DNA from: Malacoraja senta
Taxonomy: Eukaryota
Length of the DNA: 60,759 bases
Assembly (NCBI GenBank): GCA_038087875.1
Contig: JAXLNO010001148.1
Span: 127,242-188,000, forward strand
Direction: 5' to 3'
In this document: piece after piece, positions 17,724 to 59,516 of the stretch
Layout of the letters: every line of letters starts with the position of its first letter
Numbering within the stretch: position 1 is the first letter of the stretch
Translations under genes and position numbers: made by a program
The notes under the pieces: generated by a model
Seen by the model: the letters and a program-made list of their open reading frames with translations, nothing else
Database searches by the model: none
What the model was told of the DNA's origin: nothing

Positions 17724-17775
17724 ATGATTCTGTTCATCTTGTTGAGTTTCTTCCGCGTACAAGGGGCTCAAGCAG
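17724..17775 (+). CDS. MHC class I-like heavy chain, exon 1 (signal peptide MILFILLSFFRVQGAQA + 1 nt)
   Basis: ATG at 17724 in a CpG-rich non-repeat patch. Hydrophobic core with an A-Q-A cleavage motif, perfect donor G|GTAAGT (17776), phase 1. G+CG gives Ala in frame with the alpha1 exon. Too short for the ORF track. Confidence 0.75.
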
Positions 17776-18099
17776 GTAAGTTAATGACTCATTTTATTCG
17801 CTACTGGCTAAAGCGTCTTGGCTTTATCTCAATCTTGACCGGAGGCGACTGAGTTTAAAAAAGCGCGCAATACACATTCAGTCTGGTTCATGGTTCATGC
17901 GGACGTTAAAAGGGTTTAATCTCCACTGTTTCAGAACAATCCAGACTGGAGTTTCTGCTTTGATTTGCACAATGCCCCGTTTCCTCTGTGGAAGAAGGAA
18001 CTGCAGATATTGGTTTAAACTGATTTTAACCCGTGTAAAACAAACAGGAGCGACGCGATTTGAAACAAAAACATCTTTGATTTCAAGTTGTTATTGTAA

Positions 18100-19510
18100 G
18101 AATGGGAATACAATGTGGGAGAGGCGGGAAAGGGCTGTGCCTGCCTCTTTGTTGCGTCCGTCGAACAATCACTGTTCCAGACGTACACTGGCCCGATCCC
18201 CGAACTCTATCTCCGCTACATTGACCACTGCATTGATGCTACTTCCTGCTCCCATGCAGAACTCACTGACTTCATCAACTTCACCACCAATTTCCATCCT
18301 GCACTCCAATTCACTTGGACCATCTCGGACATCTCCCTACCGTTTCTAGATCTCACCATCTCCATAACAGGAAACATACTATTGACCGACATCTACTACA
18401 AACCTACTGACTCCCATAGCTATCTGGACTACACTTCTTCCCACCCTGCTTCCTGTAAAGACTGTATCCCGACTACCACTTCCTCCGTCTACGCAGCATC
18501 TGCGCCCAGGATGAGGTTTTCTTTTCCAGGGCATCGGAGATGTCCTCATTCTTTAGGAAACTGGGGTTCCCTTCTTCCATTATAGATGAGGCACTCACTA
18601 GGGTTTCCTCGATGCTCCGCTCTTACTCTCTCTACCCCCCCCCCCATTCGTACCAAGGACAGAGTCCCCCTTGTCCTCACCTTCCACCCCATCAGCCGTC
18701 GCATACAGCATATAATCCTCCATCATTTTTGCCAACTCCAACGGGATCCCACTACTGGCCACATCTTCCCATCTCCTCCCCTTTCTGCTTTTCGTGGAGA
18801 CCGTTCCCTCGGAAATTCCCTCATCAACTCGTCCTTTTCCACCCAAACCACCCCCTCCCCAGGTACTTTCCCTGCAACCGCAGGAGATGCAACACCTGTC
18901 CCTTTCCCTCTCCCCTCAACTCCATCCAAGGACCCAAGCAGTCTTTCCAGGTGAGGCAGAGGTTCACTTGCACCTCCTCGAACCTCATCTACTGCATCTG
19001 CAGTTGCAGGAGCCAACTTCTCTACATCAGCGAGGCCAAGCACAGGCTCGGCAATCATTTCACTGAACTACTCCGCTCTGTCCATCTTAACCTACCTGAT
19101 CTCCTGGTTGCTCAGCACTTCAACTTCCCCTCCCATTCACAATCTGACCTTTCGGTCCTGGGCCTCCTCCATTGTCAGAGTGAGGCCCAGTGCAAATTGG
19201 AGGAATAGCACCTCATATTTCACTTGGGTAGTTTACACCCCAGCTGTATGAACATTGACTTCTCTAACTTTAAATAGCCCTTGCATTCCCTCTCTATCCC
19301 CTCCCCCATCCCAGTTCTCCCACCAGTCTTAATGTCTTCAACTACATTCTATCTTTGTCCCGTCAACTCCCCTGACATCAGTCTGAAGAAGGGTCTCGAC
19401 CCGATAGGTCACCCATTCCTTCTCTCCAGAGATGCTGCCTGCCTGCTGAGTTACTCCAGCATTTTGTGTCTACCTTTGAGTTAAACCAGCATCTGCAGTT
19501 CTTTCTTACA
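18100..19510 (+). mobile_element. Penelope-like element (Neptune-like), 5'-truncated: RT C-terminus, GIY-YIG and pLTR
   Basis: LYLRYIDHCI (YxDD-like), LPFLDL, DIYYKPTDSHSYLDYTSSHP, CNRRRCNTC, NLIYCICSC..LLYISE. Frameshifts present. The pLTR has a mutated hammerhead-like core at 19383-19410. Confidence 0.88.
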
Positions 19511-19994
19511 CAAAGTGCATTGTTTGACAGGTTCAAGTTTATGGCCAAATTCCTCGTATGTTGCAAAACATACTTGGCGAATAAAGTGTGATTCTGATTC
19601 TGATTGATCTGATTCTGAAATGTGGGAAGAGAGCGAGGCAGTAGTACAATGCAAAATCACTAAAAGATTAGCACACACTGTGGAATTTGCTATTGACTGA
19701 GTGACAACTCTTAGCTCCAAATGTGCGGTCGTCACGTTTATGTTGTTTAGTAGTGATTTGGATAACCATATAACCATAACAGCACGGAAACAGGCCATCT
19801 CGGCCCTTCAAGTCCGTGCCGAATGCTTTTTATTTATTATTTTGAAAAATTTTTTTTTATTAACTTCCCCCTAGTCCCATCTACCTGTACTCAGACCATA
19901 ACCCTGCATTCCTTTCCCGTCCATATACCCATCCAATCTATTTTTAAAGGATAACATCGAACCTGCCTCCACCACTTCCACTGGAAGGGGATTG

Positions 19995-21160
19995 AATGTT
20001 TTGTGGCCAAGTTTGCAGATGATGCTAAAATAGGTGGAGGGGCAGGCAGTGTAGAGGATGCAAGGACTTTGCAGAAGGACTTGTTCAGGTTAGGAGAGTG
20101 GGCAGAGAAGTGGCAGATGAAATTCAGTGTAGCAAAGTGTGGAGACATGCATTTGGTAATAAGAATAAAGGCGTAGATTATTTTACAAATGGAGAGAGAA
20201 TCCAGAAATCGGAGGCACACAGTGACATGGGAGTGCTGGTGCAGGACTCCCAAAAAGGTTAATTTGCAAATTGAATCGGTAGTCAGGAAGGTGATTTATA
20301 TCAAGAGGACTGGATTACAAAAACAGAAATGTCATTCTGAGGCTTCAAAAGCGCTGGTCAGGCCACATTTGGAGTACAGTGTGCAAATTTGGGCCCCCTA
20401 TCTGAGGAAGGATGTGCTGGCTCTGGTTCAGAGGAGGTTTACAAGAATAATTCCATGAATGAGTGGGTTAGCATATGATGATAGTTTGACAGGACTGTGC
20501 GTCTACTCGCTGGAGGTAAGAAGGTTGAGGGGGGAACCTCATTGAAACTGACAGAATAATGAAAGGCAAAGATAGAGTGGATGTGGAAAGGATGTTTCCA
20601 CTGGTGGGTGAGTCTAGGACCAGAGGTCATAGCCTCAGAATTAAAGGGTGCTCTTTTAGAAAGGAGGTGAGGAGGAATTTCTTTAGTCAGAGGGTAGTTA
20701 ATCTGTGGAACACATTGCCACAGAGGGCTGTGGAGGCCAAGTTGGTGGATATTTTTAAGGCAGAGATCGACAAATTCTTGATTAGAACGGGTTATCATGG
20801 GGAGAAGGCAGGAAAATGGGATTAGGAGGCACAGATCAGCCATAATGGAATGGTGGAGTAGACTCGATGGGCCGAATGGCCTAATTCTACTCGTGTAATG
20901 TGAACGTGTACAGGTTAGGAGAGTGGGCAGAGAAGTGGCAGATGAAATCCAGTATAGCAAAGTGTGGAGACATGCATTTTGGTAATAAGAATAAAGGCGT
21001 AGATTATTTTACAAATGGAGAGAGAATCCAGAAATCGGAGGCACATAGTGACATGGGAGTGCTGGTGCAGGACTCTCAAAAGGTTAATTTGCAAATTGAA
21101 TCGGTAGTCAGGAAGGTGATTTATATCAAGAGGACTGGAATACAAAAACAGAAAATGCCG
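19995..21160 (+). mobile_element. CR1-clade LINE 3' fragment followed by a partial local duplicate
   Basis: AKFADDAK-type motif, [32 protein letters not shown]...RRNFFSQRVVNLWN and a CR1 3' tail. 20086-20332 is repeated at 20910-21157. Confidence 0.85.
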
Positions 21161-22747
21161 CCCGATTTGTAAGAGTGTCAAAGGTCACAGGGAGATGACA
21201 GGAGAACGGCACTGAGAGGGAACGATAGGTCAGCCATGATTAAATTGTGGAGTAAACTCGATGGGTCGACCAACCAAATTCTGCACCTTTGACTTATGAA
21301 GTGAGTCAAAGTTCAGAACATGAGGGATGATCTTTTTATTTCTCCCCAGACTGGTGTGTCTGGAACCAAAATTCACAGTTTAAAAATAAGGCTTCAGACA
21401 TTCTTATGGCACCAAAACATGGTGACACCTGTGTGATGCCTAGGTTAGGTCTGCTATATGATTTTACCGAGTTGTATGTGAAACGAAGCATTTCACTGTA
21501 CCTAGGTGCATGTGACAATAAAATATCATTGAATCATTGAATTCAGTGTAGTAATGAGAAGATCTTTTCACCCAGAGGGTAATTAGTCTTTCAAATTCTC
21601 TGTCCAAGAAGGCTGTGGGCATTCAGTCAATCAGATGCTTGAGGCAGGGATAGGAAGATGCTTGGATACAAAAGGAATCCAGAATTCGGTAAAATGGTGG
21701 TCTGCTCGAGGATCGGTTATGATCTTATAGAATATCAGAGATTGGGAACAAAGGATGAATGGCAACATTTTGCTTATGTTAGGTTTGATCCCACTCCACA
21801 AGAGAATCCAGAAGGAAAGAGAGTATAGAATGTTCAATTGTCATATGTGCTGACTACAAAACAATCACATTCATGTAGCAGCTTAGCAGACCTGTAAGAC
21901 AATACAAATAGATAACATACTAAAAATTCAGTAAATTGATAATCCCAAAATCTGTGCAAAAACACCGCAAATGCTTAGTTTAACCAAAGACAGTCCATAG
22001 GTCTACAGGGTCCGACTCGACACTTTACCTATCCATTCTCACCAGCGATGCTGCCTGTTCTGCTGAGTTCAACACTTTTTCTTTATTTTGTTCATTAATC
22101 ATAGCTGAGTGTAGTGTAGTTCAGGGTTCAATATACGGGAAGATTTTAATGATCACATTCCAGCACGCATCTCCAGAGCCAAACAAAACAATGACATTCT
22201 CCTTTGATGGTAATAATCTAATTTGGTGAAAGGGGAAACAGGCTTAGATATAAAGAATAACATTTATAGCAGTTCCAATGTAGGAAAATGCTTCAATGAG
22301 ATTCGTAAGAATATTATTCTGTAACATTTTACTTCGAGCAGTATAATGGCATGACATGACAATTAGCAAAATAAACATTTAAGGTGCATCTTAAAGGAAG
22401 GGATATTTAGAGAGCAATTCTATGACTTAGGCCTGCTCTTCAGATGAAATACTTAAATTTGTGAATAATCAGGAAGTTATACTGCCCGGTTCATCGTGGG
22501 TTCTGACCTCAACACCATCGAAGGGATCCACACGAGACGCTGCCTCAAAAAGGAAGGCAACATCATCCCCCTGGCCACGCTTTCATTACCTCCCCCAATG
22601 GGGTGGAAAGTATAGGTGTTTGAAAACCATGACCTCCAGGTTCAAGAATAGCTTCTTCCCAACAACTATCACGCACTTGAACGCTACACAACGCTAACCT
22701 CAACTGTGAAATTGTATGGACTGTATGCATGCCGAGGGAGGAGCTGC

Positions 22748-23400
22748 GTAGGAAGGAACTGCAGATGCTGGTTTAAACCGAAGATAGACACAAAATGCTG
22801 GAGTAACTCAGCGGGTCCGACAGCGACTCTGGAGAAAAGGAATAGGTAGCGTTTCAGGTCGAGACCATTCTTCAGACATAGTCAGGGGAAAGGGAAACGA
22901 GAGATACAGGGGGTGATAGAGAGAGATATAAGAACAAATGATTGAAAGATATGTTTTGAATGAAAGAGCTGTTGGTCTTAGATATTTAAATACAATGATC
23001 AGAGTTTGAAATCTGAATATTTTTAAATCAGTAAGATGATGGGTGAATGGGATGGAGCAAGTTAGCACAATGATGACAAAGTCTGAAGAAGGGCCTCAAT
23101 CTGAAACATCACCCATTCCTTCTCTCTGGAGATTCTGCCTGTCCCACTGAGTTATTCCAGCATTTTGTGTCTATCGCTAAGTGCTGGAGTAACTCAGCTG
23201 GTCAGGCAGCATCTCCGGAGAATGTGGCTAGATGACGTTTAGGGTAAACACCCTTCCACAGAGTGAAGAAGGGGTCTTGACCCGAAACATCTATCCATCA
23301 TCACATATCCATGTTCTCCAAGGATGCTGCCGGACCCACTAAGGTGCTCCAGCACTTTGCAACTCTTTGTGAACCAACATTTGTAGTTCCTTGTTTCTAC
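22748..23400. repeat. Cluster of inverted PLE terminal-repeat pairs
   Basis: Two successive antisense/sense pLTR pairs (gatagacacaaaatgctggagtaactcag ... ctgagttattccagcattttgtgtctatc). Confidence 0.7.
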
Positions 23401-26389
23401 AGTGTAAATTGACTGTCATTTGTAGGTAAGTGTTAGAATCTGGAGAGAGATGATGGGAATTTGCAGAGAATAAGAATGAGTTGGTCCAGAGCAAGAGTTT
23501 AATTGTCATCTGTTCTGGCAATGGAATAATGAAATTCTTATACACATATTAAATATACAACAATCAATGGTACAATTAATTAATACTAGTTATACTAGGT
23601 AACCAGACCATAACAGTGGAAAAACAAAACGTCCTTACTGCAACCAAAATAAAGTCCATCACAGATCAGAGTTGTTGAGGTAAGGTTGTGGTTAGTGTTG
23701 TGCAGTGTTTAAATGTCTGCTGCTCATGAGAAAAAAGCTGCTCTTAAACCTGGAGCTAACAGTTCTCAGGCTCTCTAACCTCAGAGGCAGTTGATTGGTT
23801 CAATGGTATTTTATATGTGGCAAGTACCGAGGTACAGTGAAATTCATTATTGTATACAGTTTAGTACAAGTATCACTATATATAAGTCCTTAGATACATC
23901 TTAGATAAGCATCTCAGATACAGTACAAGTGTATAGCAGTAGTACGCTGAGACAGTATACAGTGTCGCCAGTTTATGGTGCCATATCCAAGTCCCTCAAG
24001 TTGTAAGTGAGGGTTCTTGGCCTGACCATGAGGCCCATTGTCCTGGTGTTGTTGCAGGGTTGACCTGTCCAATCGAAGCTGTGGTGTCCTCTACTGCTGC
24101 AGGGCGCAACTGGTCCATGTGCCCGGCCTCTTGGAGCAGCACCTGGAACAGCCAAGCCCCAGGCTGCTGCAGGGTCTCCAGCACCTACTCCACTGTTGAG
24201 GCAGTCCATTCCCTCCCGCAGCCTGTCTGCCTATAAGCCATCCATCTGACTCCTTCCACTCTGGGTGGGCGAGCTGGGCCTTCCAGGTGGGTCCTCCATC
24301 CACGGTCCACAGCGAGCAAGAACTCAGTCCGTGATGGATGGGCCAGATCTTCCGGGCGAATTCCTGGTCCAGGGTGGCCGGCCCTGAGAGTATGGCCAGG
24401 GTGGTGTAGGTCTCTGATGATATTAGCTGTCTTTCTGAGGCAGCACCTCCTGTAGATCAATGGTGGGATGAATAGTATGGAATGAGTGCTTCATGGTCAG
24501 TGGACTGTTGGCTGAAGGTTCTGTTTGTATGTCTCTGTGACTATATGTGTGGAGAAGGCTTCGAAAGAGTAGGTGAAGGGGGCATTCTAAATGATGGGAT
24601 GCACATATCATTGTAAACGGGGCCCTCAAAGTATTGATCTGTAAAATGCTAAATCTGCATTTTATTGCAGGGGACTAGTTTAATGGTAGACAATCCACAT
24701 AAACACTTGTTCTTGTCTATGGAGAGTTTTGCAGACTGCTCCAATTACAATAAATTAATATATAAAGAGAGTGGGGTACAAGAAGATACATTCCTTTTAT
24801 CCATAGATGCTGCCTGTTCCACTGCGTTACTCCAGTATTTTGTCTCTATCTTTGGTGTAAGCCAGCATCTGCAGTGCCTTCCTACACAGACACAAGAAGG
24901 ATCCCAACAATGGGTTCTGTTTGTATGGAGTTGATACGTTCTCCCTGTGACCGCTCGGGTTTCCTCTGGGTGCTCAGAGGGCAGTGGAGGCCGGTTCTCT
25001 GGATACTTTCAAGAGAGAGCTAGATGGGCCTCTTAAAGATAGCGGAGTCAGGGGATATGACAAGAAGGCAGGAACGGGGTACTGATTGGGGATGATCAGC
25101 CATGATCACATTGAATGGCGGTGCTGGCTCGAAGGGCCAAATGGCCTCCTCCTGCACCTATTGTCTATTCTCTATTGTCTATTGTTTCCTCCCATGTTCC
25201 AAAGACGTGTGGGTTTGTAGGTTTATTGGCCGCTGTAAATTGCCCTGAGTGTGTAGGATGTGAAACAGGGAAAACATAGAACTAGTGTATGGGTGATTGA
25301 TGGTCAGTGCAGACTCAGTGGGCAGAAAGGCCTGTTTCCATGCTGCATCTGCTAAAAAAGATTGGTGAGCATGATACCCGAATTCAAACGTCACAGAGAA
25401 ACCAACACATTTTAGTTTGTACAGACAAGAACACCCAAGAATGTTTGTATTCAAAGAGACCAACAAAGTAATAAAGGTTTGCAGGTACAAAGTCCAACAG
25501 TGAGCATTGCTTAATCTAATCTTATACTTAGAACATTGTAGACGTAGGGCATTCAGCACAGGGAGGCTGACCCATTAATAATAATAATAATACATTTTAT
25601 TTATAGGCGCCTTTCAAGAGTCTCAAGGACACCTTACAGTATTTAACAAGTAAAAAAACATATAATCGGAGTAAAATAAATAGTAAAGACATCACAAATA
25701 GACAAATTAAAGACAGAATTCGATCCAAAAAACAAACAAAATCAGAAACACAATGTAAAGAGAGAGCAGCGGCAGCTAAACCGCGCCAGCGTACACTCTC
25801 CCTTCCAGCAAAATCCCATTGAGGGGGACGAGAACAAATGGGGTAATGTAGGGATGGGGGCGCCACCAAGAATGAAGGGGGAACTGGTGGGGATGGGGTC
25901 TGCTGCCATTTGCGGCAACAGGCAGTGGATAGGACTGTTCGGTACTTTTGTAACTTTGTCTGCGCCAACACATGGCGACACTTTTGTACTGCCTAGGTTC
26001 AGTTTAGTTTATTGTCACGTGTACCGAGGTACAGTGAAAAGCTTTTTGTTGCTTACTAACCAGTCAGTAGAAAGACAATACATGATTACAATCAATGCAT
26101 TTACAATGTAGAGACACATGATAAAGGAATAATGTTTAGTGCAAGGTGAAGCCAGCAAAGTCCGGTCAAGGATAGACCGAGGTTGTATGGAAAACAAAGC
26201 ATTTCACTATACACAGATACCTTGGGTACATGTGACAATAGAGTATCATTCAATCATTCTTTCATTCATCAGTCCTATTCCTCACAATTTATTTTCCATA
26301 TAACACAGGCACCCATGGCCGCCAATGCTCCTTTGATTTTCTTTGCCATTTACGTGTGTTGATCTGGCTAATGGGTTTTGTGAAGTACA

Positions 26390-26700
26390 GCACAGTGGTG
26401 CAATGGTAGAGAGTTGCTGCCTCATAGCGCCAGAGACACAGGTTCAATCCTGACTTCAGGTCTGTCTATGTGGAGTTTGCACATTTTCACTGTGACCGAG
26501 TGGGTTTCCTCCAGGTGTTCCGGTTTCCTCCCACAACCCAAAGGCATGCAGGTTTGTAGGTTAATTGGCCTATGTAAATTGCCCCTAGTGTGTAAAGAGT
26601 GGACGAGAAAGTGGAATAACTAGAGTAAATGGTAGATCAATGGTCAGCATGGACACAGTGGGCCGAAGGGCCTGTTTCCGCTGTAACTCTAAACTAACCA
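26390..26700 (+). mobile_element. tRNA-derived SINE
   Basis: A-box TGGTGCAATGG, B-box GGTTCAATCC, core and tail. Confidence 0.8.
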
Positions 26701-27639
26701 TAAAAACCACTAAAATTACTGATTTATTGCAAGTAGCTAGATTCAAAACTATTTAAACTACTGAAGACGGGTCCTGACTCAAAACATTACCTGTCCATTC
26801 CAGCCACAGATGCTGCCTGACTCACTGAGTTCCTCCAGTATTTCATTGCTCAAGATTCCAACATGTCTCGATATTAACTACTTGTTTGAATAACACTGTT
26901 GTTTTGGTATTTTTATGATATTTTTACGGTAGAATTGCATGCTGAAATGTTCATACCTTGAACATAGTTGAAAAGGATAGTAATTCATTAATGCATGCAG
27001 GAATATTATTATTAAAATTGACTTTAGTAAAATACCAAAAACACTGGCAATATGCAGTAGGTCAGGCCACATCTGTGGGCAGGAAAGCAGAGCTAATGTT
27101 TCAGGCCAGAGACCCTTCAGGACTGGGAAGGAGGAGAAAGGAGGAACTGAAGATGATGGTTAACAAAATAAGACACAGTGTTGGAATAACTCAGTGGGAC
27201 AGGCAGCATTACTGGAGAGCGTTGGATGCTAAGGGTTTGGGTCTGGACCATTCTTCAAACTGATTGTAAGGGTAAATAAAGCTAGAAGAGAGGAGGGGCA
27301 GAACAAAGTATGGCAGATGATAGGTGATAAATACCAAAATGAGAGAGCAGTCCTGAACTACTATCTGCCTCATTGGTGACCCTCGGACTTTCTTTGATCG
27401 GACTTTACTGGCTTTACCTTGCACTAAATGTTATTCCCTCATCATGTATCTCTACACTGTAAATGGTTAGTTTGTAATCATGTATTGTCTTTACGCTGAC
27501 TGGTTAGCAGGCAACAAAAGCTTTTCACTGTACCTCGGTACACGTGACAATAAACTAATCTAAAATGTTGCAGAGAGGATTTTCCGACAGGCAAATGATT
27601 GGACAAAGGCCAGAGATGAAAAGACAAAAGGAATTAAAG

Positions 27640-28800
27640 AATGGTGAATTGTGAGAATAGAGGAATGTGAAGGTGACGGGGGAGGGCAGAAATAGATGCA
27701 AGTCCAGATGGGGCACAGGGGAGGGGAAGAAATGGGGGGGTTAGGTTACCTAAAATTCTCATCACTTCCCACCCAAACCATCGCATCCCAGGTAATCTCC
27801 CCTGCAACTGCGGATGTAACATCTGTTCCTGTACCTCCTCTGTGGTCTGCCTCGAGGGACCATAGCAGTCCTTCTAGGTGAGACAAGAGGTTCATGTACA
27901 CCTTCTCTAAACTGATCTATTGCATCCGGTGTTCCCAATGTGGCCTCCTGTATATCGACGAGACGAAGCATTGACTCCACGACCATTTCGCCAAAAATAT
28001 GCACTGGATCTGCCATGGACTTCAACACTGGATCTCCTGGTTGCTAACCATTTGAACTTCCTTTCCCATTGCCATATTGACCTTTCTGTCTTGGGCCTCC
28101 TCCATTGCCAGTGTGAGGTCACATGCAAACAGCCCCTAATATTCTTCTTGGGTAGCTTTCAACCTGATGGTGTGAATATTGAACTCGCCAATTTTAGGAA
28201 ACCTAAGCCCTACTCTCCTCCTCCTCCCCTTTCTCCCCCACACCCATATTTCTCCCCATATTTCTCCCCACCGTTGCCCCCTCCCCTGTAGCCCACCTGG
28301 ACTTGCACCTATTTCCCTCCTCTCCCCCTTCCTTCTAAATTTGCCATTTGCAACTTTTCAATTATTTTGTTGCGCACCTTCTATATTTTTATCTCTGGCC
28401 CTTGTCCAATAATCTCCCTATCAGCTCCCCCCATTACCGCCTCCTCACCTATGTTCACCTATTACCTGCCCCGCCTTTCATCCAGTTTCCTTCATCTCCC
28501 CCTCCCCCTCTACAATGCCCATACCACCCCCCCCCCCAACCTCCCACAATTAGTCTGAAGGATCCTGTTCCACAACACCACATATCCATGTTTTCCAATG
28601 ATACTGCCTGACCCGTCGAGTTGTCCCAGCACTTTGTGTCTTTCTAGGAGAAAAAAAAGAAGCATGTTAAGCTGCAGGAATTGTGGGGGAGGGAGAATGT
28701 CTTTCAATGATAGACACAGAAAGCTGGACAGGCAGCATCTCTGGAGAGAAGGAATGGGTGACGTTTTGGGTCGAGACCCCTTTTCAGACTTTCCAAGCCT
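27640..28800. mobile_element. Degenerate PLE 3' fragment (GIY-YIG) with pLTRs
   Basis: LIYCIRCSQCGLLYIDETK motif near 27915-27970 on the + strand, followed by degenerate pLTR copies. Confidence 0.7.
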
Positions 28801-29439
28801 TATCTGGTAGAATTTAATGAGATAGACATCTGTTTGTGGTCGAATGCATTATCTGAAAGCTGAATGTAAATTGTACTGTTAAGGCTTTACAATACGTCAT
28901 TGGTTAAAATGTGCATGGATTGAGCATATGGGCTTAATTGTCCTCCTTTGAAAGGAAGCTCACAGCATGTCTCAATTGCATGTCAACCTAGTATCATAAA
29001 AACAACTGCTGTAGGAACTCGGGTGGTAGAGGAATATCTTTGTAAGAAGGAACTGCAGATGCTGGTTTACACCGAAGATAGAAACAAAATGCTGGAGTAA
29101 CTCAGTGGGTCATGCAGCATTTCTGGCAAAAAGAAATAGGTGACATTTCAGGTTGAGACCCTTCCTCACATCTTCAAGAGTCAAGAGTATTTTATTGTCA
29201 TATGTCCCAGATAGGACAATGAAATTCTTACTTGCTGCACAACAGAAGGGAATGTAATTTGGAGGGAATTAAATTTTTCACAATGATTTTTAACTGGTAT
29301 AGTAAGTCACTTCTATTATTCATAAACCATTGTAGTAATATTTTCATAACAATATTTGAAATGGCATAAGACCAAGACTGCATGAGAAGTCATCTTCTGA
29401 TACAGTTTAGGATTTGGCAGGAAATGCTAAAAATATGGT

Positions 29440-29702
29440 TCAGCACGGTGGTTTTACAGCGCAAGGACCCGGGTTTGATCCTGACTACGGTTTCTGTCTG
29501 CATGGAGTTTGTACGTGCTTCCCATGACAGGCGCAGGTTTCCTCCGGGTGCTCCGGATTCCTCCCACATTCCAATGACATACCAATTGGCTTAGTAAAAT
29601 TCTAAATTGTCCCAAGTGATAGTGTGCGGGGATTGCTGGTCGGCGAGGATTCAGTGGGCTGAAGGACAGGTTTCTGCACTGTATCTCTAAATTAAACTAA
29701 AT
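29440..29702 (+). mobile_element. tRNA-derived SINE
   Basis: B-box gggtttgatcc, family core, tail actgtatctctaaattaaactaaa. Confidence 0.75.
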
Positions 29703-31405: not shown

Positions 31406-31429
31406 CATAATAGTGCTGCCCAAAAGTCA

Positions 31430-35330: not shown

Positions 35331-35402
35331 GGGTATAGATAGGATAGAGAGTAACTGTCTCTTTCCTGGGGCAGTAGAGACTAGAACTGGAGGTTTAAGG
35401 TG

Positions 35403-40018: not shown

Positions 40019-40104
40019 CTTATTGGTAACTTTGTGTGATCTTATTTTGTTAGGATGCAAATCCTATGGGAACGCTTTCTCAAAGAGATAGATAATGATG
40101 TAGA

Positions 40105-44519: not shown

Positions 44520-45005
44520 GTAGATAAAAGTGCTGGAGAAACTCAGCGGGTGAGGCAGCATCTATGGAGCGAAGGAAATAGGCAACGTTTCGGGCCGAAA
44601 ACCCTTCTTCAGACTGATGTGAGGGTGGGTGGGAGGGGGGGGGGTGGGGCGCAGGAAGAAGAAAGGAAAAGGTGGAGCCAGTGGGCTGAGGGAGAGCTGA
44701 GTAGGGGAGGAGAAAGTAAGGACTACCTGAAATTAAAGAAGTCAATGTTCATACCGTTGGGGTGCAAACTGCCCAAGCGAAATATGAGGTGCTGCTCCTC
44801 CAATTTACGGTGGTCCTCACTCTGGCCATGGAGGTGGCCGAGGGCAGAAAGGTCGGATTTGGAATGGGAGGGGGGAGTTGAAGTGCTGATCCACCGGGAG
44901 ATCAGGTTGGTTGTTGCGAACCGAGCGGAGGCGTTCGGCGAAACGATCGCCAAGCCTGCGCTTGGTCTCACCGATGTAGAGCAGCTGACATCTAGAGAGA
45001 AACGT
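44520..45005 (-). mobile_element. PLE 3' fragment with pLTR
   Basis: Minus ORF 44723-45025 ends HGQSEDHRKLEEQHLIFRLGSLHPNGMNIDFFNFR, the same C-terminus as the other PLE copies. pLTR at 44520-44620. Confidence 0.85.
44581..44616 (-). ncRNA. Minimal type I hammerhead ribozyme-like motif in a PLE pLTR
   Basis: Minus strand reads CAGU-CUGAAGA-A-GGGU-UUUCG-GCCC-GAAA-CGUU-GCC: core boxes, helix II and palindromic ACGU helix III. There is an extra A before helix II, and helix I is only ~2 bp. Confidence 0.55.
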
Positions 45006-45849
45006 TTTGAATGATGTCTACCCATTGCAGGGTAAATGGGACTAGCTTAAATGGGGTATCTTGATTAGCTTGGATAAGTTGGGCCAAAGGGCTTGTTTCC
45101 CAGCTGTGTGACTCTCTATGACTGCTTTATAGCAAAGAGCGCTGCTGTCTCACAGCTCCAGTGATCCGGGTTCAATCATCTCCAGTGCAGTCTGTGTGGA
45201 GTATAAGCATTCTCCCTATGACAATGTTTGTTCTCCAGTTTCCTCCCACATACCAAAATGTGCTGATTTAGTAGATTAAGCCACCGCTGAAAATAGGTGG
45301 ATTTGTGGCATTGATAGAAATGAGAAAGATCCGTTTTGGGGAAAATTAGTGTTGGAATGGTTTTGTTCTCTGGGCTAGAGTGGGCTCAGGAGGCTGAAAG
45401 GCCTCTTTCTCTGTCACATGGATTTATGGGCAGTTATTTATCCTTGAACTGCCTTCTTTCTCATTTTAGTCAACAGTGTAAAATTGAACTAATTGTCTGG
45501 ATTGAACTATTTAACAATTGTAGATGAAAGGAAGAGCAGAGGCTGCTTTCCTCCACACACAAAGTGCTGAGGAACTCAACGGGTCAAGTGGCATCTTTGG
45601 AGAACATGGGAAGGCAGATATTTCGGGTGAGGATCCTACTTCAGACTGAAGTTGGGTCACATTAGAACATGCTTTGTGCTCACACTCGCAGTCCAGTGTT
45701 AGTTTTCAAGGATTTTTTGTTATTCCCAGCTTGTAGTTGTTACATATTCAGCAGAGAGAAGACGAGACAAACTAAAGCACCTGCAAAACACAACTAAAAG
45801 ACCACAGAAAGAAGCTTGAAAAGAAGGCTCTTATCTAAACAACGTACTT

Positions 45850-47710
45850 TCAAGAGTGAGTTAGATTTAGCTCTTAAGGCTAAAGGAATCAAGGGATATG
45901 GGGGAAAAGATTAGTTAAAACAAATGTAGGTCCCTTGCAGTCAGAAACAGGTGAATTGATCATGGGGAACAAGGACATGGCAGACCAATTGAATAACTAC
46001 TTTGGTTCTGTCTTCACTAAGGAAGACTTAATTAACTGCCAAAAATAGCTGGGGACCGGGGGTCAAATGAGATGGAGGAACTGAGTGAAATCCAAGTTAG
46101 CCGGGAAGTGGTGTTAGGTAAATTGAATGGATTAAAGGCTGATAAATCCCCAGGGCCAGATAGGCTGCATCCCAGAGTACTTAAGGAAATAGCCCCAGAA
46201 ATAGTGGATGCATTAGTAATAATTTTTCAAAACTCTTTAGATTCTGGAGTAGTTCCTGAGGATTGGAGGGTACCTAATGTAACCCCACTTTTTAAAAAGG
46301 GAGGGAGAGAGAAAACGGGGAATTACAGACCAGTCAGTCTAACATCGGTAGTGGGGAAACTGCTAGAGTCAGTTATTAAAGATGGGATAGCAGCACATTA
46401 GGAAAATGGTGAAATCATTGGACAAAGTCAGCATGGATTTACGAAAGGTAAATCATGTCTGACGAATCTTATAAAAATTTTCGAGGATGTAACTAGTAGA
46501 GTGGATAAGGGAGAACCAGTGGATGTGTTATATCTGGACTTTCAGAAGACTTTCGACAAGGTCCCACATAAGAGATTAATATACAAACTTAAAGCACACG
46601 GTATTGGGGGTTCAGTATTGATGTGGATAGAGAACTGGCTGGCAGACAGGAAGCAAAGAGTAGGAGTAAACGGGTCCTTTTCACAAGCTGGGGGGCAGTG
46701 TTAGCTGTGAGGAGGGTACTAGGAGGCTGCAAGGTGACTTGGATAGGCTGGGTGAGTGGGCAAATGCATGGCAGATGTAGTATAATGTGGATAAATGTGT
46801 GGTTATCCACCTTGGTGGCAAAAACAGGAAAGTAGACTATTACCTGAATGGTGGCCGATTAGGAAAACGGGAGATGCAACGAGACCTGGGTGTCATGGTA
46901 CACCAGTCATTGAAAGTAGGCATGCTGGTGCAGCAGGCAGTGAAGAAAGCAAATGGTATGTTAGCATTCATAGCAAAAGGATTTGAGGAGCAGGGAGGTT
47001 CTACTGCAGTTGTTCAGGGTCTTGGTGAGACCACACCTGGAGTATTGCCTACAGTTTTGGTCTCCTAATCTGAGGAAGGACATTCTTGCCATAGAGGGAG
47101 TACAGAGAAGGTTCACCAGACTGATTCCTGGGATGTCAGGACTTTCATATGAAGAAAGACTGGATAGACTCGGCTTGTACTCGCTAGAATTTAGAAGATT
47201 GAGGGGGGATCTTATAGAAACTTACAAAATTCTTAAGGGGTTGGACAGGCTAGATGCAGGAAGATTGTTCCCGATTTTGGGGAAGTCCAGAACAAGGGCT
47301 CACAGTTTAAGGATAAAGGGGAAATCATTTAGGACTGAGATGAGAAAAACATTTTTTACACAGATAGTGCTGAATCTCTGGAATTCTCTGCCACAGAATG
47401 TAGTTGAGGCCCGTTCATTGGCTATATTTAAGAGGGAGTTAGATGTGGCCCTTGTGGCTAAAGGGATCAGGGGTTATGGAGAGAAGGCAGGTGCAGGATA
47501 CTGAGTTGGATGATCAGCCTTGATCATATTGAATGGCGGTGCAGGATCGAAGGGCCGAATGGCCTTCTCCTGCAACTATTTTCTGTGTTTCTATGTTTCT
47601 AAAAGCAGGAATGGGGTACTGATTCTAGATGCAGGCATGATCATATTGAATGGCGGTGCTGGCTCAAATGGCCGAATGGCCTACTCCTGTGCCTATTTTT
47701 CTATGTTTCT
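45850..47710 (+). mobile_element. CR1-clade LINE RT region, decayed
   Basis: [52 protein letters not shown] and a CR1 3' tail. Stops and an internal deletion across the catalytic motif. Confidence 0.9.
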
Positions 47711-48200
47711 ATAATTAGTATACATTCGGCTATTTGTGGTGTTTCTTGAAAACACGAAGACGAGAGAATGTAAAGGATCTGCAGAACAACTAAAAGACTG
47801 CAGAAATCAGCTTGAAAAGAAGGCTCTTCATCTATACAACATCATTATGTTTTATTCAGCTATCATTGTTTGTAGAGTTTCTTATTGGAATGAAAACATC
47901 ATCCAAGTTTTGACCCTTCCTTATTACGCCTGGTCCCAGGGGCATGGTTGGCATTAGCTCATTACCTTCATCCTAATAAAGGGTTGTTGTTCACAGTTGT
48001 GCCTAGGTTTTTATCAGTTATAACCTTGAGTTCACAAACTGTTCTTTGTCTCTGGGCTAAAGTTCACAGACTCTCCTTTTCAAGGAGTGAGCAGTTTTAA
48101 GCAAACTGACTTCAGCAAATCCTTACAAATTCCATCACCCCCCCCCCCCCCCCACTTTGATTCATCAATCAATGCCAGAGGGAATGAATCATCTAAGTAA

Positions 48201-48882
48201 AGGGGCCTGTCCCACTTACGTGTCCTTGGAACGCAAATTACGCGTTGAGCCGCGATGGTCCGGCGAAGGTCGGGCACGATTTCATGCGTACGCACAGCCG
48301 TCTGCAGCGCGTGATGTCATTTGAAGATGGACACAAAGCTGGAGTAACTCAGCGGGATCGGCAGCATCTCTGGAGAGAAGGAATGGATGACGTTTCATGT
48401 CGAGACTCTTCTTCAGTCTGAAAAGAAGGGTCTTGACCCGAAACATCACCCATTGCTTCTCTCCAGAGATGCTGCCGGTCCCGCTGAGTGACTCCTGCAT
48501 TTTGTGTCTATCTTCAATTTTCTTGGCCCCGCTCTGGGAGCAGAAGTGGGGGCGGATCCGGACCGCAACGGCCGTGAGCCCCAGGCCGAGTTCGGCGATC
48601 GTTTGCCTGCTTCTGCTGCTGTTGAAAGTGAGACGTTGCATCGCGCCAGGGTCTTGGGCCTGACCCACTTTGGCCGTCAGTTCCGCGACAGGCCGTTGGC
48701 GCGCGAAGATTTCATTCACTACAAAATTTTTGGAGCCCCGCGCAATGTCGCGCACAACTACATACCCTTCCGCGCTTCCAAGTGTGACCGGCCCCGCGCG
48801 GCCATACGATGCCCGTACGCCTCAACGCGACCACAAAGTCGCATAATTTGTGTGCCAAGGACACGTAAGTGGGATAGGCCCT
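48201..48882. mobile_element. Harbinger-like MITE with TAA TSD, carrying a nested pLTR palindrome
   Basis: TAA|AGGGGCCTGTCCCACTTACGTGTCCTTGG ... CCAAGGACACGTAAGTGGGATAGGCCCT|TAA, with ~45-bp imperfect TIRs. Confidence 0.8.
48321..48517. repeat. ~197-bp near-perfect palindrome of two PLE pLTRs
   Basis: TTGAAGATGGACACAAA...CTTCTTCAG T CTGAAAAGAAG...TTTGTGTCTATCTTCAA. Confidence 0.88.
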
Positions 48883-49842
48883 TAAAAATACCAAGGAAAG
48901 GTAGCGCAGCTACACATCACTGGATATCTTTAACCTGTTCAATGCCATCGCCAAGTACACTAGGGGTCATGGCCAATAGTGAAAAATAAACTTGGCAGTG
49001 AACAGCTTAATGGTCTCCATATTTTAGAGAAAGCCTTCAATGCCCATGATGGGTGAGCCTTATTATATCTATGTTTCTCTAAATATAGGAAGCACTTTTG
49101 TGGTAAAAGATGGGGCAGCTCGGGCCTCGAAAAGATCCAACCTTATGTGCAGCTTTACATTTGTTTATATGCAATAAGCAAAAAGAACACAATAGAAGAT
49201 AAAACATGATAATAATTATAAGCAAAGCCAAGAGATCGTGGCCTTACACGAGTTGCTGCCTTGCAGCACCAGAGACCCAGGTTTGAACCCGACTACGAGT
49301 GGTGACTGTACGGAGTTTGCATGTTCTCCCCGTAACCTGCGTGGCTTTTCTCTGAGATGTAGGTAAATTGGCTTGGTGTAAATGTAAATTGTCCCTAGTG
49401 TGGGCTGAAGGGCCTGTTTCAGCACTGTATCTCCAAAGCAGTGGTTCTTAACCTGGGGGTCGTTTGTGGTTTTTCTGGGGGGTCATGAATGGGTTGAAAA
49501 GAACATCAATTTGTTGAGCCTATTTTTAGGAACCTAACAAAGGTACATACCACACACAGTATTTTGTTCACGAATGCGCGTACGTATAAACAGGGCCTAT
49601 GAGAGGGGGGTGCAGGGGGTACATCGTACCCGGGAGCTGAAGGAGGGGGGACGGGAATTTCCTGAAATCTCAGAAAATGTTTGCATATATTTTGTGAAGA
49701 CTAGCATTCACTATTTGTGTGAGCCGACAGAGTTTTATATATCGTAATTCGTAGAAATTGTGATCCATAATATAGCAGGGAATTTTAACTGGCGAGTGTG
49801 TGGTCGGGGGAACCTGATTAAAAGAGGGGGAAGGGGAAGAAC

Positions 49843-50335
49843 CATCACTACTGATGGGTCTTCCCTGCAGGAGGGGGGGGGGGTGCAGCATTAGGACCCA
49901 ACAGAGTCATCACTACTGATGGATCTTCCCTGTAGGAGGAGGGGGGATGCAGCACTAGGACCCAACAGAGTCATCACTACTGATGGGTCTTCCCTGTAGG
50001 AGAAGGGAGAGCATGAGGACCCCACAGAGTCATCACTACTGATGGGTCTTCCCTGCAGGAGGGGGGGAGCACTAGAACCCAGCAGAGTCATCACTACTGA
50101 TGGATCTTCCCTGCAGGAGGGGGGGGGGGGGGGTGCAGCACTAGGACCCAACAGAATCATCACTACTGATGGATCTTCCCTGCAGGAGGAGGGAGAGCAT
50201 GAGGACCCCACAGAGTCATCACTACTGATGGATCTTCCCTGTAGGAGAAGGAGGGGAGAGCACTAGAACCCAGCAGAGTCATCACTACTGATATATCTTC
50301 CCTGTAGGAGGGGGGGAGCACTAGGAGCCAGCAAT
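49843..50335 (+). repeat. Minisatellite, 8 units of 58-69 bp
   Basis: Units begin CATCACTACTGATGG at 49843, 49908, 49972, 50031, 50089, 50158, 50217 and 50280, with variable G-runs. Confidence 0.95.
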
Positions 50336-50619
50336 CAGACCATGTGCTGTCTGCATGGTTTAGGTTGTGGGCCTGGTGCTATGCCGGGAACTCTGCTGAG
50401 GTGATGGCTCTGGCCCGCTGGTGGCCGGTGGAGAGGCGAGGGTCGGCAGAGTCGCTGGTGGAGGCCCGTGGGGAGCTGGAGTAGAGATATGGGCAGCAGC
50501 ATCATTGGCTTTCTGAAGACAGTGAAGGTCGGCGACAGTGGCTGCGGTGGCCTCGCCTGGGGAGGTGGTGAGAGTCAGGAGCCGCAGCTGTTTGAGTGGT
50601 CCGGGCCTGGGTTTGGGTC

Positions 50620-50730
50620 AGTGTGTGGATGGGTGGGTGTGAGTGAGTGGGTGAGGGTGTGTGTGTGTGGATGTGTGTGGGTGTATGTGAGTAGGTGAGT
50701 GAGTGTGTGTCTGAGTGTATGTGTGTGTTA
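50620..50730 (+). repeat. GT-rich compound microsatellite
   Basis: Imperfect (GT)n/(GAGT)n tract. Confidence 0.85.
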
Positions 50731-52128
50731 GTGGGAGGGTGAATTCTATAAATGAAGTTAAAACCATTAGATCTGTTGAACTTGTTAACAGACTATTGAC
50801 TTGGTAACCTGTTTCCAAATGTTTGTGTTAGCTTCAGAATACTATTAACAATTCCAGCAACAGTAGCTTCTGCAGAGGTCATTTAGCAAACTCAAGCTGA
50901 TTAAGAATTATTTAAGGTCGACATTGTCTCATGAATGTCTTGTGGATTTGGCCAGGCTAAGTATTCAAAGTCAGTTTTATTCATCACATACACCCGAAGG
51001 TGCAGTGAAGTGAATTTGCCAGCAGTGATACACGTAAAAAGAACACACAATACACAATAAAATTGAACACAAACATCCACTACAGCATTCTTCACTGTGG
51101 AAGGCAACAAGTTTCAGCCAGTCCTCCTCCTTTGTTCACCTGTGTTCGGGGCCATAACCCCTCCGTAGTCGCATCTAGGGACGGACCGATGTACAAGGCC
51201 CTCTCGTCGGGATGATCCAAACTCTGACGTTGGGACGGACAAACACACTCTGCGGCTTGGAGGTCCCGACTCGGCACTTTCCTAGTGGAGACCGCAGCTT
51301 CAGGATGTTATAGGCCGCAGGCCAGCGGTTCGAGCTCATCTCTGGTGATCCCCGGCAAGGGATCCCAGACTCCGGATGGTAAGTCCACGCCATGCCCGCG
51401 GCTAGAAGCTCCGCAGACCACAGCTCCACGGTGTCAACGTATTGAATCAATAGTATTGAATCATACATTGCCAGAACAATACATTTTCATGCTGTGATTT
51501 GACATTTTTCACACAAAAAAGGCCAGGAAAGCTCTTTATATAAAGTAAATTTATATAATAAAAGTAAATCTTTTACTTTTTACTAATAATTATGTCTTTT
51601 GATGATATGATCTGCATTGAAACATAAAAGGATGTTTCAATGTGAATTCTTTCTCCTTATCTGTATTGTAGCATAAACAAAGATGTTCAAAACAAAGGTA
51701 GATAAAATGCTAGAGAAACTCAACGGGTGAGGCCGCATGTATAGAGTGAAGGAAAACAAATGTGCTTTCTGATCCTTTTATGTTATTTATATTTATTTAT
51801 ATATATCATGGAGGGTGTATAGAGACATAAGGCCTCAAATGCAGAAAATCAACAGAGTGCCCCATTCCACCCATCTCTCAACTTCCATACCCCTTTTTGC
51901 CGTGCAGGCTACAGCTCATGGCATAAAACTGTAGCATAGTGGATAAAAACAGGATGACTAATGGAGAAGGGAAGGGGGCCCAAAATAAACTTTGTACCCA
52001 CTGATAAAATTCCTCTCAGGCCCTGCGTATACACACAAACAGTGTGTGTTGTGAACCATGTCTTCCAAGACGCGCACGTATAGTGAAACATTTCTCAAGT
52101 TGGGCTTCACAAGCATTGTTCAAAATCC

Positions 52129-53749
52129 GTGGTCAAGCCGCAATGTGTTCTCTGTGCCAAGGTTTTGAGTCACGAGAGCATGAAGCCCAGCAAACTGAAG
52201 ATCCATTTGGAGTCTTGTCACAGCAACCTGGCGGGGAAGAGCGTGGACTATTTCAAACGAAAAGAAGCCATAACTCAAGGGATCCCGCATCTATTCAACG
52301 GGTCATTGCGCTCATCAAAATGAAGCAGCGTTAGAGGCTTCATACCGGATTGCTTATCGAATCGCACAGACTAAGAAACCTCACAGCATCGGTGAAGAGC
52401 TTATCAAGCCATGCCTTCTCGAAGCAGCGAAGTTGGTGCTGGAATCTCGGATATGAGTAATGATATTCTGCTGCAAGTAGTGAGGGCTGTGAAGAGCAGT
52501 CCAGTGTATTCACTGCAACTGGGCGAGTCAACAGATGTTGCCTCATGTTCCCAACTGCTAGTCTACATTCGTTACCTCGATGGAGTAGCCATGACGGAGG
52601 TGTACATGTTCTCGGAGCCATTGGCTACTACCACTCGGGGAGAAGATGTGTTCAGAATGCTGGAAGCCTTCCTCATCAAACATGAGCTTGGCTGGGAACG
52701 CCTTGTCGGGATGTGTACAGATGGGGCACCTTCCATGGTCAGTTGCAGATCCGGTTTCCAAGACTTCGTGAATGATGTCGCTCCACATGTCTCCTTCCCC
52801 CACTGCATGATACATCGCCATGCTTTAGCGATGAAGACTCTCCCTCTTGGTCTTCGAGAAGTGCTTTCAGATGTGGTGAAGATTGTGAACCACATCCGAG
52901 AGAGTGCAACAAACTCAAGAATCTTCAAGCGATGTGTGAAGAAATGGGCGCCGATTTCACTATTCTGTTATTCCACACAGAGGTGCGCTGGCTTTTGCGT
53001 GGTAAAGTTCTCAATCATGTGATTCGACTTCGAGTGGAAATAGCGCTGTTCTTGGAGAGAAGGGGTACTGAGAAGGAGAATCAGCTTCATGAAAAGATGC
53101 GTTGAACTGTTCGTGATGAAGGTTGCTTACTTGGCTGACTTCTTCGCTGAGGTGAATTCCTTGAACCTGTCGCTTCAAGGAATCCTCCCAATGGCATTCA
53201 GGAGGAACCTTTACCAGAGAACAGTCCAGGACGGTGACATGGCTATCTTCCCTGAGATGACGACTCTCCTGGATGCTACGCCTGATGCTGAATGCCACTT
53301 CCACGAGGAGATCTCAACCCACCTTCTGGCAATTAGTGAAGCCATCGAACGTTACTTCCCCAGACTGGACGACCGCTCTCGTGATGAGTGGATGCTCTGA
53401 CCCTTTTCCGTTGAAGACGGTGGCATCAGCGATACTGACGTGACCGAAGGTTGAATTTTACTGAATTCGTGAAGATGCGCAACTCAAGAGTGACTTCATG
53501 GAACAAGAGCTCGCCACGTTTTGGCTGAAAGTGAAGGAATGTCCTGCTCTTTCGAAGAGGGCCCTGACCCTATTGGTCCATTCCCCCTCAACCTCTCACT
53601 GTGAGGGTGGATTCTCAACTATGGTAACTCTGAAAACGAAGGTACGCAATAGGCTTGTGATCGACACTGACATGAGGTGCTGCCTGTCGAGCATTTGTCC
53701 ACGTTTTGATTGCCTGATGACTGCGAAGCAATTTCAGCCATCCCATTGA
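52129..53749 (+). pseudogene. Buster-type hAT transposase pseudogene
   Basis: BED finger CVLC...HLESCH, LQLGESTDVA (catalytic D to G), CTDGAPSM, HCMIHRHAL, RWLLRG, CEGGFS..KTKVRNRL. Split over several frames. Confidence 0.88.
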
Positions 53750-54779
53750 CTGAGCAATGGCAGACATGTTTTAATAAATCGGGCTGTTTTTTTTCAAATT
53801 TTGTTTCAGAGGTCACGGTACTGATCAAGAATGCCTGATGGGGTCGTGTGGCCAAAAAGGTTAAGAACCACTGCTCTAAAGCTTAAAACTAAAGGGGCTA
53901 ATAAAGGCCACAAAGTGGCTTTAGTGAGTCGGATTACAGAAAATCCCACATCTTTTTCAAGGTTTCATGGTTAGTTTATTGTCACATATACCAATTAAGG
54001 TACATTGAAATGCAGACTACCATACACCATACTAAAAAAAAGCAACAAGACACACAATAACATAAAAGTTAACATAAACATCCACAACAGAGGAGACCGC
54101 ACGTTCCTTACTGTGATGGAAGGCAATAAAGTCTAATCTCCTTCCTCTTTATCTCCCGCAGTCGGGGCAGTCAAACAATCTGCAGTCGGTGGTCGAAACC
54201 CCCCGTTGAGGAATCGAAACTCCCACGTCGGAGCGGTCGAAACTCTTGCGGCTTGGAGATCCCGGATGTCGGTCTCGACCGTAGACCACAGGCTCCGCGA
54301 TGTTAAAGTCTTGCAGGCTCTCACAGTTGGAGCCCTAAAGTCGATCCCCGACAGGGATCGCGAGCTCCATGATGGTAAGTCCACAGGCTCCTGCGATGGA
54401 TCTCCCAGTCGATCTCTAGCAAAAGGCCGCCATTCATCAATGTTAGGCCGCATTGTGGACGGAGATACGATACAGAAAATATCGCATCTACGTCGAGGTA
54501 AGAGATTAGGAAAAGTTTCCCACAACTCCCCCAACCCCCCCCCCCCCTCCCCACCCCCAAAACAAGCTAAAGAACACTAAAGAATATACATTTAACACGT
54601 ACAAAACAGACACAAAGAAGGAAGGGACAGACGACTTTTGGCGAGGCAACCATTGCAGCAAAAGGTGGATTGCTTAAGGATATAGAAGGGAATATGTGCT
54701 TGGAGTTTGGCGAGGTTTGGTTTCACCAAGGAAGACATGTAGAATAGTAAGGACTATTAATAGTAAGTACATCATAAAA

Positions 54780-55565
54780 TCCTCCAACATTTTTGCCACC
54801 TCCAACGGGATCCCACTACTGATCACATCTTCCCATCTCCACCCGTTTCTGCTTTCCGCAGAGACCGTTCCCTCCGAAACTCCCTGGTCAACTCGTCCCT
54901 TCACACCCAAACCACCCGCTCCCCGGATACTTTCTCCTGCAACTGCAGGAGATGCAACACCTGTCCCTTTATGTCCCCCCCTCGACTCCGTCCAAGGACC
55001 TAAAGTCTTTCCAGGTGAGGCAGAAGTTCACTTGCACCTCTTCCAACCTCATCTACTGTATCCGCTGTTTCAGTTGTCAACTTCTCTACATCAGTGAGAC
55101 CAAGCGCAGGCTCGGCGATCGTTTTGTTGAACACTTCCCCTCAGTCCGTCTTACCCTACCCGATCTCCCGGTGGCTCAGCACTTCAACTCCCCCTCCCAT
55201 TCCCAATCTGACCTTTCTGTCCTGGGCCTCCTCCATTGTCAGAGTGAGGCCCAGCCCAAATTGGATGAACAGCACCTCATATTTCGCTTGGGTAGTCTAT
55301 ACTCCAGCGGTATGAACATTGACTTCTATTACTTTCGATAGCCCTTGATTTCTCTCTCCATCCCCTCCCCCTTCCCAATTCTGCCACCAGTCTTACTGTC
55401 TCCGCCCACATTCTATCTTTGTCCCTCCCCTGACATCAGTCTGAAGAAGGGTCTCGACCCAAAACGATGCCCATTCCTTCTCTCCAGGGAAGCTCCCTGA
55501 CCCGCTGAGTTACGCCAGCATTTTGTGTCTCTCTACGATTTTAACATCTGCAGCATCTGCAGTTC
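54780..55565 (+). mobile_element. PLE 3' fragment (GIY-YIG) with pLTR
   Basis: FTCTSSNLIYCIRCFSCQLLYISETKRRLGDRF...GMNIDFYYFR, with a pLTR carrying a G12A-mutated hammerhead-like core at 55441-55468. Confidence 0.88.
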
Positions 55566-55569
55566 TTTC

Positions 55570-56130
55570 TTACACATGGAGAATCAATGTGGAGAATGCT
55601 AACATGCAGGGACACTTTGAAGTTAAGCAAGAAGGAGATGTTGGATCACTTGAAGAGAAATGTGGATAAATCCCCAGGATAGAGGGGTGTAGTGGATGAT
55701 AATAATAATCGTTGAAAACATTAGTGCCGTGCTGGTTTCCGACGGGCACGGTGACGGACGCACCACACATCTCTGTCCTCCATGCAACTGGCAAGCTCCT
55801 CTTTTGTCTCTACACATGCGTCTTCCATCAACGTCTTCAGCATCATCTTGATTGGCCGTCCTGGGTCAAGTCTTCCATGGGTGGGTTCCCACAGCACAAC
55901 CTTGTTTGCTGGCATTTCTGGGTGGCGGAGCCAGTGACCTGCGAGCCTCATCCTTCTCAACGTGATCTTCTCGGTCAGAGGTGGATTCTCACCATAGAGC
56001 TGGGCGTTGGTGATGTGGTCCCTCCATCTGACATTTTGAACTTTTCCGAGCATTCGGGTGTAGGTACCATCGAGAGACTAGGACAGTGCTGGAGTGAGAG
56101 TCCATGCCTCACACCCGTACAATAATATGG
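55570..56130 (-). mobile_element. RTE-clade LINE 3' fragment
   Basis: VRWRDHITN...RRMRLAGHWLRH...LWEPTHG...GRP...EDRDVW C-terminal signature, with an (ATT)n-like tail near 55700. Confidence 0.75.
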
Positions 56131-56311
56131 TGTCTACAGTTGTACGGAAGGCCAAATATTCAAGCTGTAGTTCAGTGACAAGTAGAGTTCTGCAGGGATC
56201 TGTGCTGTGACCCTTGCTACTTGTGACATATATAAATAACTTGGACCCTGGTGTTCAGAAATTACCCAGTCATAACAATTAATCAAATAATGATTTTTAT
56301 TTTTATTTCAG

Positions 56312-56587
56312 ATTATCACTACGTTCAAGGACAGTTTGGTTGTGAGGTGAACGATCACAGTCCCACTGTAGGGATATTGAAGTTGGCTTTTGATGGAAGA
56401 TATGCATTTAGTTTTGATAAGGACAAACTAAAGTGGACGGTGCATGATCCAATAGCTGAGCCCTTCAAAGAGAAATGGGACAAGAATGAAAAAATGAACC
56501 GTTATTTCAAGAGCTTGTTAGAACATGACTGTGTGGATCTATGGCTTACATACTATGCAATTGGAAAGACATACCTGACCAGAAAAG
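56312..56587 (+). CDS. MHC class I-like heavy chain, exon 3 (alpha2 domain)
   Basis: Polypyrimidine tract ending tttcag|AT at 56311/56312, donor G|GTGAGT at 56588, 276 nt, phase 1 at both ends. Encodes (N)YHYVQGQFGCE...AFDG...W...KWD...C...YY..GK..L.RK, with H93, Q96, G100-C101, D119-G120, W133, K146-W147, C164 and Y171. Confidence 0.95.
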
Positions 56588-59500: not shown

Positions 59501-59516
59501 AGTTTAACTTGATATC

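Follow-up and report, generated by a model that had tools for sequence, protein, structure and literature searches.

Front half of a probable UGA gene, a non-classical class I lineage of sharks and rays, in the skate Malacoraja senta

The stretch analyzed here (the window) comprises 60,759 nt of the genome of the skate Malacoraja senta (contig JAXLNO010001148.1), and positions 17724-56587 of its forward strand very probably hold the front half of one skate copy of UGA, with promoter, leader, alpha1, and alpha2. [quoted passage not shown] The initial annotation, made from the sequence letters, had proposed three exons of 52, 261, and 276 nt that splice in phase 1 into an open frame of 196 codons, and our analysis bore out their coordinates, strand, and splice sites (Table 1). 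Every intron is in phase 1 with GT/AG borders, and the joined frame has no stop codon. The leader exon, which is hydrophobic over its 17 codons, is indeed invisible in lists of open reading frames and lies about 24 kb from alpha1. The listed class I residues (H3, D29, H93, Q96, D119, G120, and C101-C164, in HLA numbering) are likewise present, and the distance of 63 residues between the two cysteines of alpha2 is the spacing of the C101-C164 pair.

Two in-frame start codons were compared. The RefSeq models of two skates begin seven codons upstream (MREVVRE-), at the position that corresponds to ATG 17703 in the window. ATG 17724 is the better start, because it is conserved across skates, whereas ATG 17703 is missing from all four Rhinoraja loci examined.

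Table 1. Features of the UGA gene in the window and exon positions in the orthologous Amblyraja radiata locus (L002).
Feature	Position	Strand	Evidence or remark
Proximal CCAAT-box site, TCAAT in the window copy	17595..17599	+	Comparison with A. radiata and four Rhinoraja UGA loci
Minimum extent of the 5' untranslated region; short upstream open reading frames and non-conserved in-frame ATG 17703	17631..17723	+	Alignment of mRNA contig L001 begins at 17631
Exon 1: ATG and signal peptide, 17 codons + 1 nt, 52 nt	17724..17775	+	Donor CAG/gtaagt; mRNA departs from the genome exactly here
Intron 1, 24,335 nt, crowded with retroelement sequence	17776..42110	+	
Exon 2: alpha1, 261 nt	42111..42371	+	Acceptor tctag/, donor CAA/gttagt; 9ch4_A, E = 6e-37; mRNA block 42109-42371
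Intron 2, 13,940 nt	42372..56311	+	
Exon 3: alpha2 with C101-C164 pair, 276 nt	56312..56587	+	Acceptor tttcag/, donor AAG/gtgagt; Pfam MHC_I; 9ch4_A, E = 4e-35; mRNA block 56314-56587
Start of intron 3	56588..60759	+	alpha3, transmembrane, and tail exons expected past the window end
A. radiata leader exon	L002 10022		
A. radiata alpha1 exon	L002 41881		
A. radiata alpha2 exon	L002 53464		
A. radiata alpha3 exon	L002 74155		
A. radiata tail exon	L002 87707		

The assignment to UGA is based on a solved structure and on phylogeny. The resemblance to MHC class I far exceeds what chance would give. The alpha2 exon is recognized by the Pfam model PF00129 MHC_I (E = 2e-13, 50.7 bits with a cut-off of 28.3), as is a full-length A. 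radiata orthologue (P0154, 73.9 bits). The alpha1 exon alone had no Pfam match, but among its PDB hits are class I chains of fish, amphibians, or birds at E = 1e-9. The top PDB match of both domain exons was chain A of entry 9ch4, which aligned without gaps (E-values in Table 1) and outscored the next chain by about 90 bits for alpha1 and about 70 bits for alpha2. This entry, released on 2026-03-18, is titled "Crystal structure of shark nonclassical MHC CLASS I, UGA". It was reached by a fold search with the AlphaFold model of P0154, a model (mean predicted local distance difference test score, pLDDT, 68.7; alpha1 44-60) that was used solely to reach the title of the PDB entry. What ties the name UGA to the family is a Stegostoma protein (P0176), which shares a clade with the window protein and aligns with 9ch4_A over the full 268 residues with a score of 568 bits. 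The 9ch4 protein and the window protein have in common F143 and L159, the alpha1-helix motif GFHGIIKGQ, and the conserved Cys in DGCE. They differ in that one is from a shark and the other from a skate, with about 65% identity (counted from printed alignments), and in residue 84, which is Lys in 9ch4 and Arg in the window.

A single coherent family emerged when the alpha2 exon was compared with 1.84 billion representative proteins and the A. radiata orthologue was used in a word-index search. Its members come from skates (Amblyraja, Leucoraja, and Rhinoraja), other batoids (sawfish, manta, and stingray), and sharks (Heptranchias, Heterodontus, Pristiophorus, Stegostoma, Scyliorhinus, Cetorhinus, and Mustelus), and their RefSeq names are generic or misleading ("F10 alpha chain-like" or "MR1-like"). 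Two trees were inferred, in which the close relative P0176 stood in for the 9ch4 sequence. In the first (67 sequences, 178 alpha1-alpha2 columns, IQ-TREE, LG+C20), the window protein was placed in a skate subclade (support 100/99) within a batoid subclade (100/99) within the UGA clade (100/99), and the split between sharks and batoids inside UGA follows the species tree. A separate sister lineage (100/100) and a chimaera clade fell outside UGA. In the second tree, which had 83 sequences and included 62 other vertebrate class I representatives, UGA was a single clade with a Shimodaira-Hasegawa-like approximate likelihood ratio test (SH-aLRT) support of 99, with the window protein inside. The sister lineage, which is represented by L. 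erinacea XP_055486430.1 ("MR1-like" in RefSeq), is the next clade out (UGA plus sister, 100/97). It has the FHG..KG motif of the alpha1 helix in common with UGA and is only 41% identical. The initial annotation was thus right in describing a spliced, non-classical MHC class I-like gene, and its suggestion of an undescribed lineage fell away, since the UGA clade holds the window protein at 100/99. It had also stated that the gene could not be assigned to a lineage; the 9ch4 match and the two trees place it in a named one, an outcome that the initial annotation had itself set as the mark of a gene that is not novel.

Splicing of the two introns was seen in the mRNA of a relative. A 3,455-nt mRNA contig (L001), from a public sequencing run of a related skate, encodes a full-length protein of 334 amino acids and matches the window in three blocks that abut one another (mRNA 6-154 to 17631-17776, 152-414 to 42109-42371, and 417-690 to 56314-56587). 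In a three-way alignment, this mRNA departs from the genome exactly at the exon 1 donor and resumes in exon 2. Junctions 17775^42111 and 42371^56312 are therefore both used in a close relative. The check by junction reads that had been proposed for the gene was answered in this related-skate mRNA; no RNA run of the same species was found, and the reads that were aligned to the window gave no usable junctions. Two of the four runs aligned in this way resemble DNA of relatives, since their contigs cross exon-intron borders. Another run, probably RNA from a relative, had low, exon-only coverage with zero depth in bins 41955-41997 and 42385-42427, which lends weak support and is not junction evidence.

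The orthologous loci of other skates indicate what may lie beyond the window. A. radiata XP_032898133.1 is 92% identical to the window protein over 196 residues, and the L. erinacea LOC129716032 proteins are 88-90% identical over the same length. These orthologues, titled "class I histocompatibility antigen, F10 alpha chain-like" in RefSeq, have the same exon plan as the window gene and differ from it by 16-23 amino acids. The introns and flanks of the A. radiata locus are collinear with the window at about 89% identity, and its alpha1 exon has 94% nucleotide identity to exon 2; intron 1 is about 31.8 kb long in A. radiata and 24.3 kb in the window. The A. radiata gene spans 77.7 kb. No alpha3 was found in 56588-60759 by stop-to-stop frames and tblastn, and the gene appears to be cut by the window end, because alpha3 lies 20.4 kb past alpha2 in A. 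radiata, whereas the window ends 4.2 kb past alpha2. The 15 aligned orthologues have an alpha3 C1-set domain (64.2 bits), a transmembrane segment, and a short tail, and 12 of the 15 carry the tail motif Tyr-x-x-Ile/Val (YQNI, YENI, YNAV, and others). This motif belongs to the class that routes CD1b, CD1c, and CD1d through endosomes. Judging from these orthologues, the full gene would continue with exons for an alpha3 C1-set immunoglobulin domain, for the transmembrane segment, and for a short tail with Tyr-x-x-Ile/Val, and the heavy chain would pair with beta2-microglobulin and pass through endosomes.

Some of the neighboring sequences in these loci were also recorded. In L002, a second tblastn match to A. 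radiata residues 206-328 (alpha3 to transmembrane segment) was found at 80478-80861, gapped and with 44% identity, 6 kb past the true alpha3. Several RefSeq isoforms of L. erinacea LOC129716032 (P0152, P0153, P0155, and P0173) fuse UGA to a downstream GPR139-like receptor. These fusions are probably read-through or mis-joined models; a GPR139-like neighbor had no match in the window. L. erinacea has one gene of the UGA clade and one of the sister lineage on a single 127-kb contig. For linkage to the MHC, no marker gene was found within the window; UGA and other class I genes are located on one chromosome-scale contig in Stegostoma, Pristis, Cetorhinus, and Mustelus.

The residues that hold the peptide ends in classical class I molecules were read off against a manta class I protein, which has all eight of them and aligns without gaps, and only these landmark anchors were mapped to HLA numbering. 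Six of the eight are kept in the window protein (Y7, Y59, R84, K146, W147, and Y171). The other two are replaced, T143 by Phe and Y159 by Leu, in the window protein and in the aligned UGA members shown, such that the full classical MHC class Ia anchor set is not present. The sequence agrees with a putative non-peptide groove. According to a review, UFA and UGA bind lipids like CD1d, based on crystal structures and mass spectrometry cited as a personal communication (PMC12562908), and UFA has been called CD1-like in an MHC paper of 2023 (PMC10751288). From this literature, UGA may bind lipids in a CD1-like manner. The likenesses to CD1 comprise the reported lipid binding (PMC12562908), the tail motif of the UGA orthologues, and the hydrophobic residues at two peptide anchors. 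As a difference, the sequence shows no particular kinship with CD1: the CD1-type model Pfam PF16497 MHC_I_3 scores 17.2 bits on the window with a cut-off of 35; P0154 had no match to this model at E < 0.01, and no CD1 chain was among the best PDB sequence matches or the top 50 fold matches. Two cysteines of alpha1 may also be mentioned. The Cys of DGCE at mature residue 30, for which no partner is obvious, is near-invariant in UGA (at least 90% of 15 sequences), and the window copy has an extra Cys at mature residue 64 (TVCETG, alpha1 helix) that is absent from skate orthologues and 9ch4.

The two domains evolve at different rates. The ratio of nonsynonymous to synonymous substitution rates (dN/dS) between the window and A. 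radiata was 0.85 in alpha1 and 0.29 in alpha2, and between the window and L. erinacea 0.53 and 0.22, respectively. Among four Rhinoraja paralogues, the corresponding ratio of differences per site (pN/pS) was 0.86 in alpha1 and 0.24 in alpha2, with zero nucleotide differences in alpha3; all of these ratios rest on small counts. Purifying selection acts on alpha2, and alpha1 is the faster-evolving domain. The fast alpha1 is a trait of the family and not decay of the window copy, because it is also seen in the annotated full-length (334-aa) Rhinoraja paralogues.

Copy number of UGA differs among elasmobranchs. In Rhinoraja longicauda, at least 10 distinct UGA proteins are annotated; identities among them are 91-99%, and none is labelled as an isoform. 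Four of its UGA loci (L003-L006) are located at 26.4, 30.3, 34.1, and 41.4 Mb of the 41.5-Mb chromosome CM130181.1, spread over 15 Mb, and are whole-gene duplicates with 95-97% identity including introns. Elsewhere, sharks have one or two UGA loci and sawfish three. Read depth over 41611-42871 was also considered. In one run of a related skate (X2), depth reaches 170-290 over the alpha1 exon and the adjoining intron sequence, beside a divergent 289-nt contig at depth 3.6, and in another (X3), the exon and flanks assemble at depth 11 in a very small contig set of 108 Mb. The depth in these two runs suggests many near-identical copies, as a hint that has no single-copy baseline for comparison. 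UGA has been called single- or low-copy (PMC12562908), and its amplification in skates may be unreported. As a tentative model, which we put forward as possible and do not favor strongly, skates, unlike sharks, may have recently amplified UGA by whole-gene segmental duplication, with copies that diversify mainly in alpha1 and keep an identical alpha3, forming a lipid-presenting family that would include the window gene. If true, the skate UGA family would be comparable to the mammalian CD1 isoform expansions.

Three other explanations of the locus were considered. That the gene represents an undescribed non-classical class I lineage might be suggested by the failure of Pfam to recognize alpha1 alone and by the uninformative RefSeq names of the orthologues, but a solved UGA structure matches both exons far above any other chain, and the UGA clade is well supported with an internal shark-batoid split. 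The 9ch4 match, the P0176 link, and the two trees together refute such a lineage, and we assign it a negligible probability. A classical peptide-presenting class I gene would account for the six retained peptide-end anchors, including R84, K146, and W147, but not for Phe and Leu at the remaining two across the aligned UGA members shown. Such a gene is also difficult to reconcile with the position of the window gene outside the clades of the other sampled shark and ray class I genes and with the endosomal YxxI/V motif in the tails of its orthologues, which is typical of CD1-type trafficking, and this explanation is thus very improbable.

Several observations weigh against the view that the window holds the front of a working, lipid-type UGA gene, and some of them bear on whether this copy is a dead or silent duplicate, with three open front exons and a gene that is broken downstream or untranscribed. 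Of about six coding exons, the window contains only three. No sequencing run with the exact sequence of the window was found in the run search (the best shared 0.46 of the 31-mers of an exon), and reads of four runs aligned to 41611-42871 gave mostly repeat-driven joints and no usable junction. In the promoter, the CCAAT box in GCTGGTCCAATGAC is identical in A. radiata and the four Rhinoraja UGA loci, whereas the window copy reads GCTGGTTCAATGAC, with TCAAT in its place; this change may weaken the promoter. A further element, TATTTTTAT, about 35 nt downstream of the CCAAT box, is conserved. Few changes underlie the alpha1 dN/dS of 0.85, and relaxed constraint would account for it as well. As for lipids, the evidence for binding by UGA consists of the personal communication in the review and the title of the PDB entry; a literature search found no primary paper behind 9CH4, and mentions of the lineages only in PMC12562908 and PMC10751288. 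In sequence comparisons and in fold ranking, class I, MR1, and ZAG stand nearer to UGA than CD1 does. Because of this, and because MHC_I_3 remains below its threshold, "CD1-like" is taken here to describe a likeness of function, not membership of the family. For a dead or silent duplicate in particular, the recent whole-gene duplication that makes UGA multi-copy in skates, the TCAAT, the high alpha1 ratio, and the private changes of the window copy (the additional alpha1-helix Cys and a Val in place of a Leu that is invariant in the family) all fit. Against it, the 196 codons have no stop or frameshift, all splice sites are canonical, alpha2 has a dN/dS of 0.29, and the fast alpha1 is also found in full-length Rhinoraja paralogues, such that it is no sign of decay. 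We therefore consider a dead or silent copy rather unlikely, and a skate UGA copy, represented here by its front half, remains the preferred reading.

As a gene discovery this adds little, since UGA is named, a crystal structure exists, and RefSeq already includes the skate orthologues, with names that are uninformative. What is gained is the exact position of each exon and the correct lineage of a gene labelled "F10 alpha chain-like" or "MR1-like" by automatic annotation, together with evidence for ATG 17724 as the conserved start. Many recent skate UGA duplicates with a fast alpha1 would bear on how early lipid-type antigen presentation diversified.

Retroelements are present in the introns of the gene. 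Intron 1 contains an open frame of 1,168 codons (35400-38906, + strand, same orientation as the gene) for open reading frame 2 of a long interspersed nuclear element, with endonuclease and reverse transcriptase (RVT_1, E = 3e-41). More reverse transcriptase fragments were found at 59513-60505 (+) and 31599-32099 (-).

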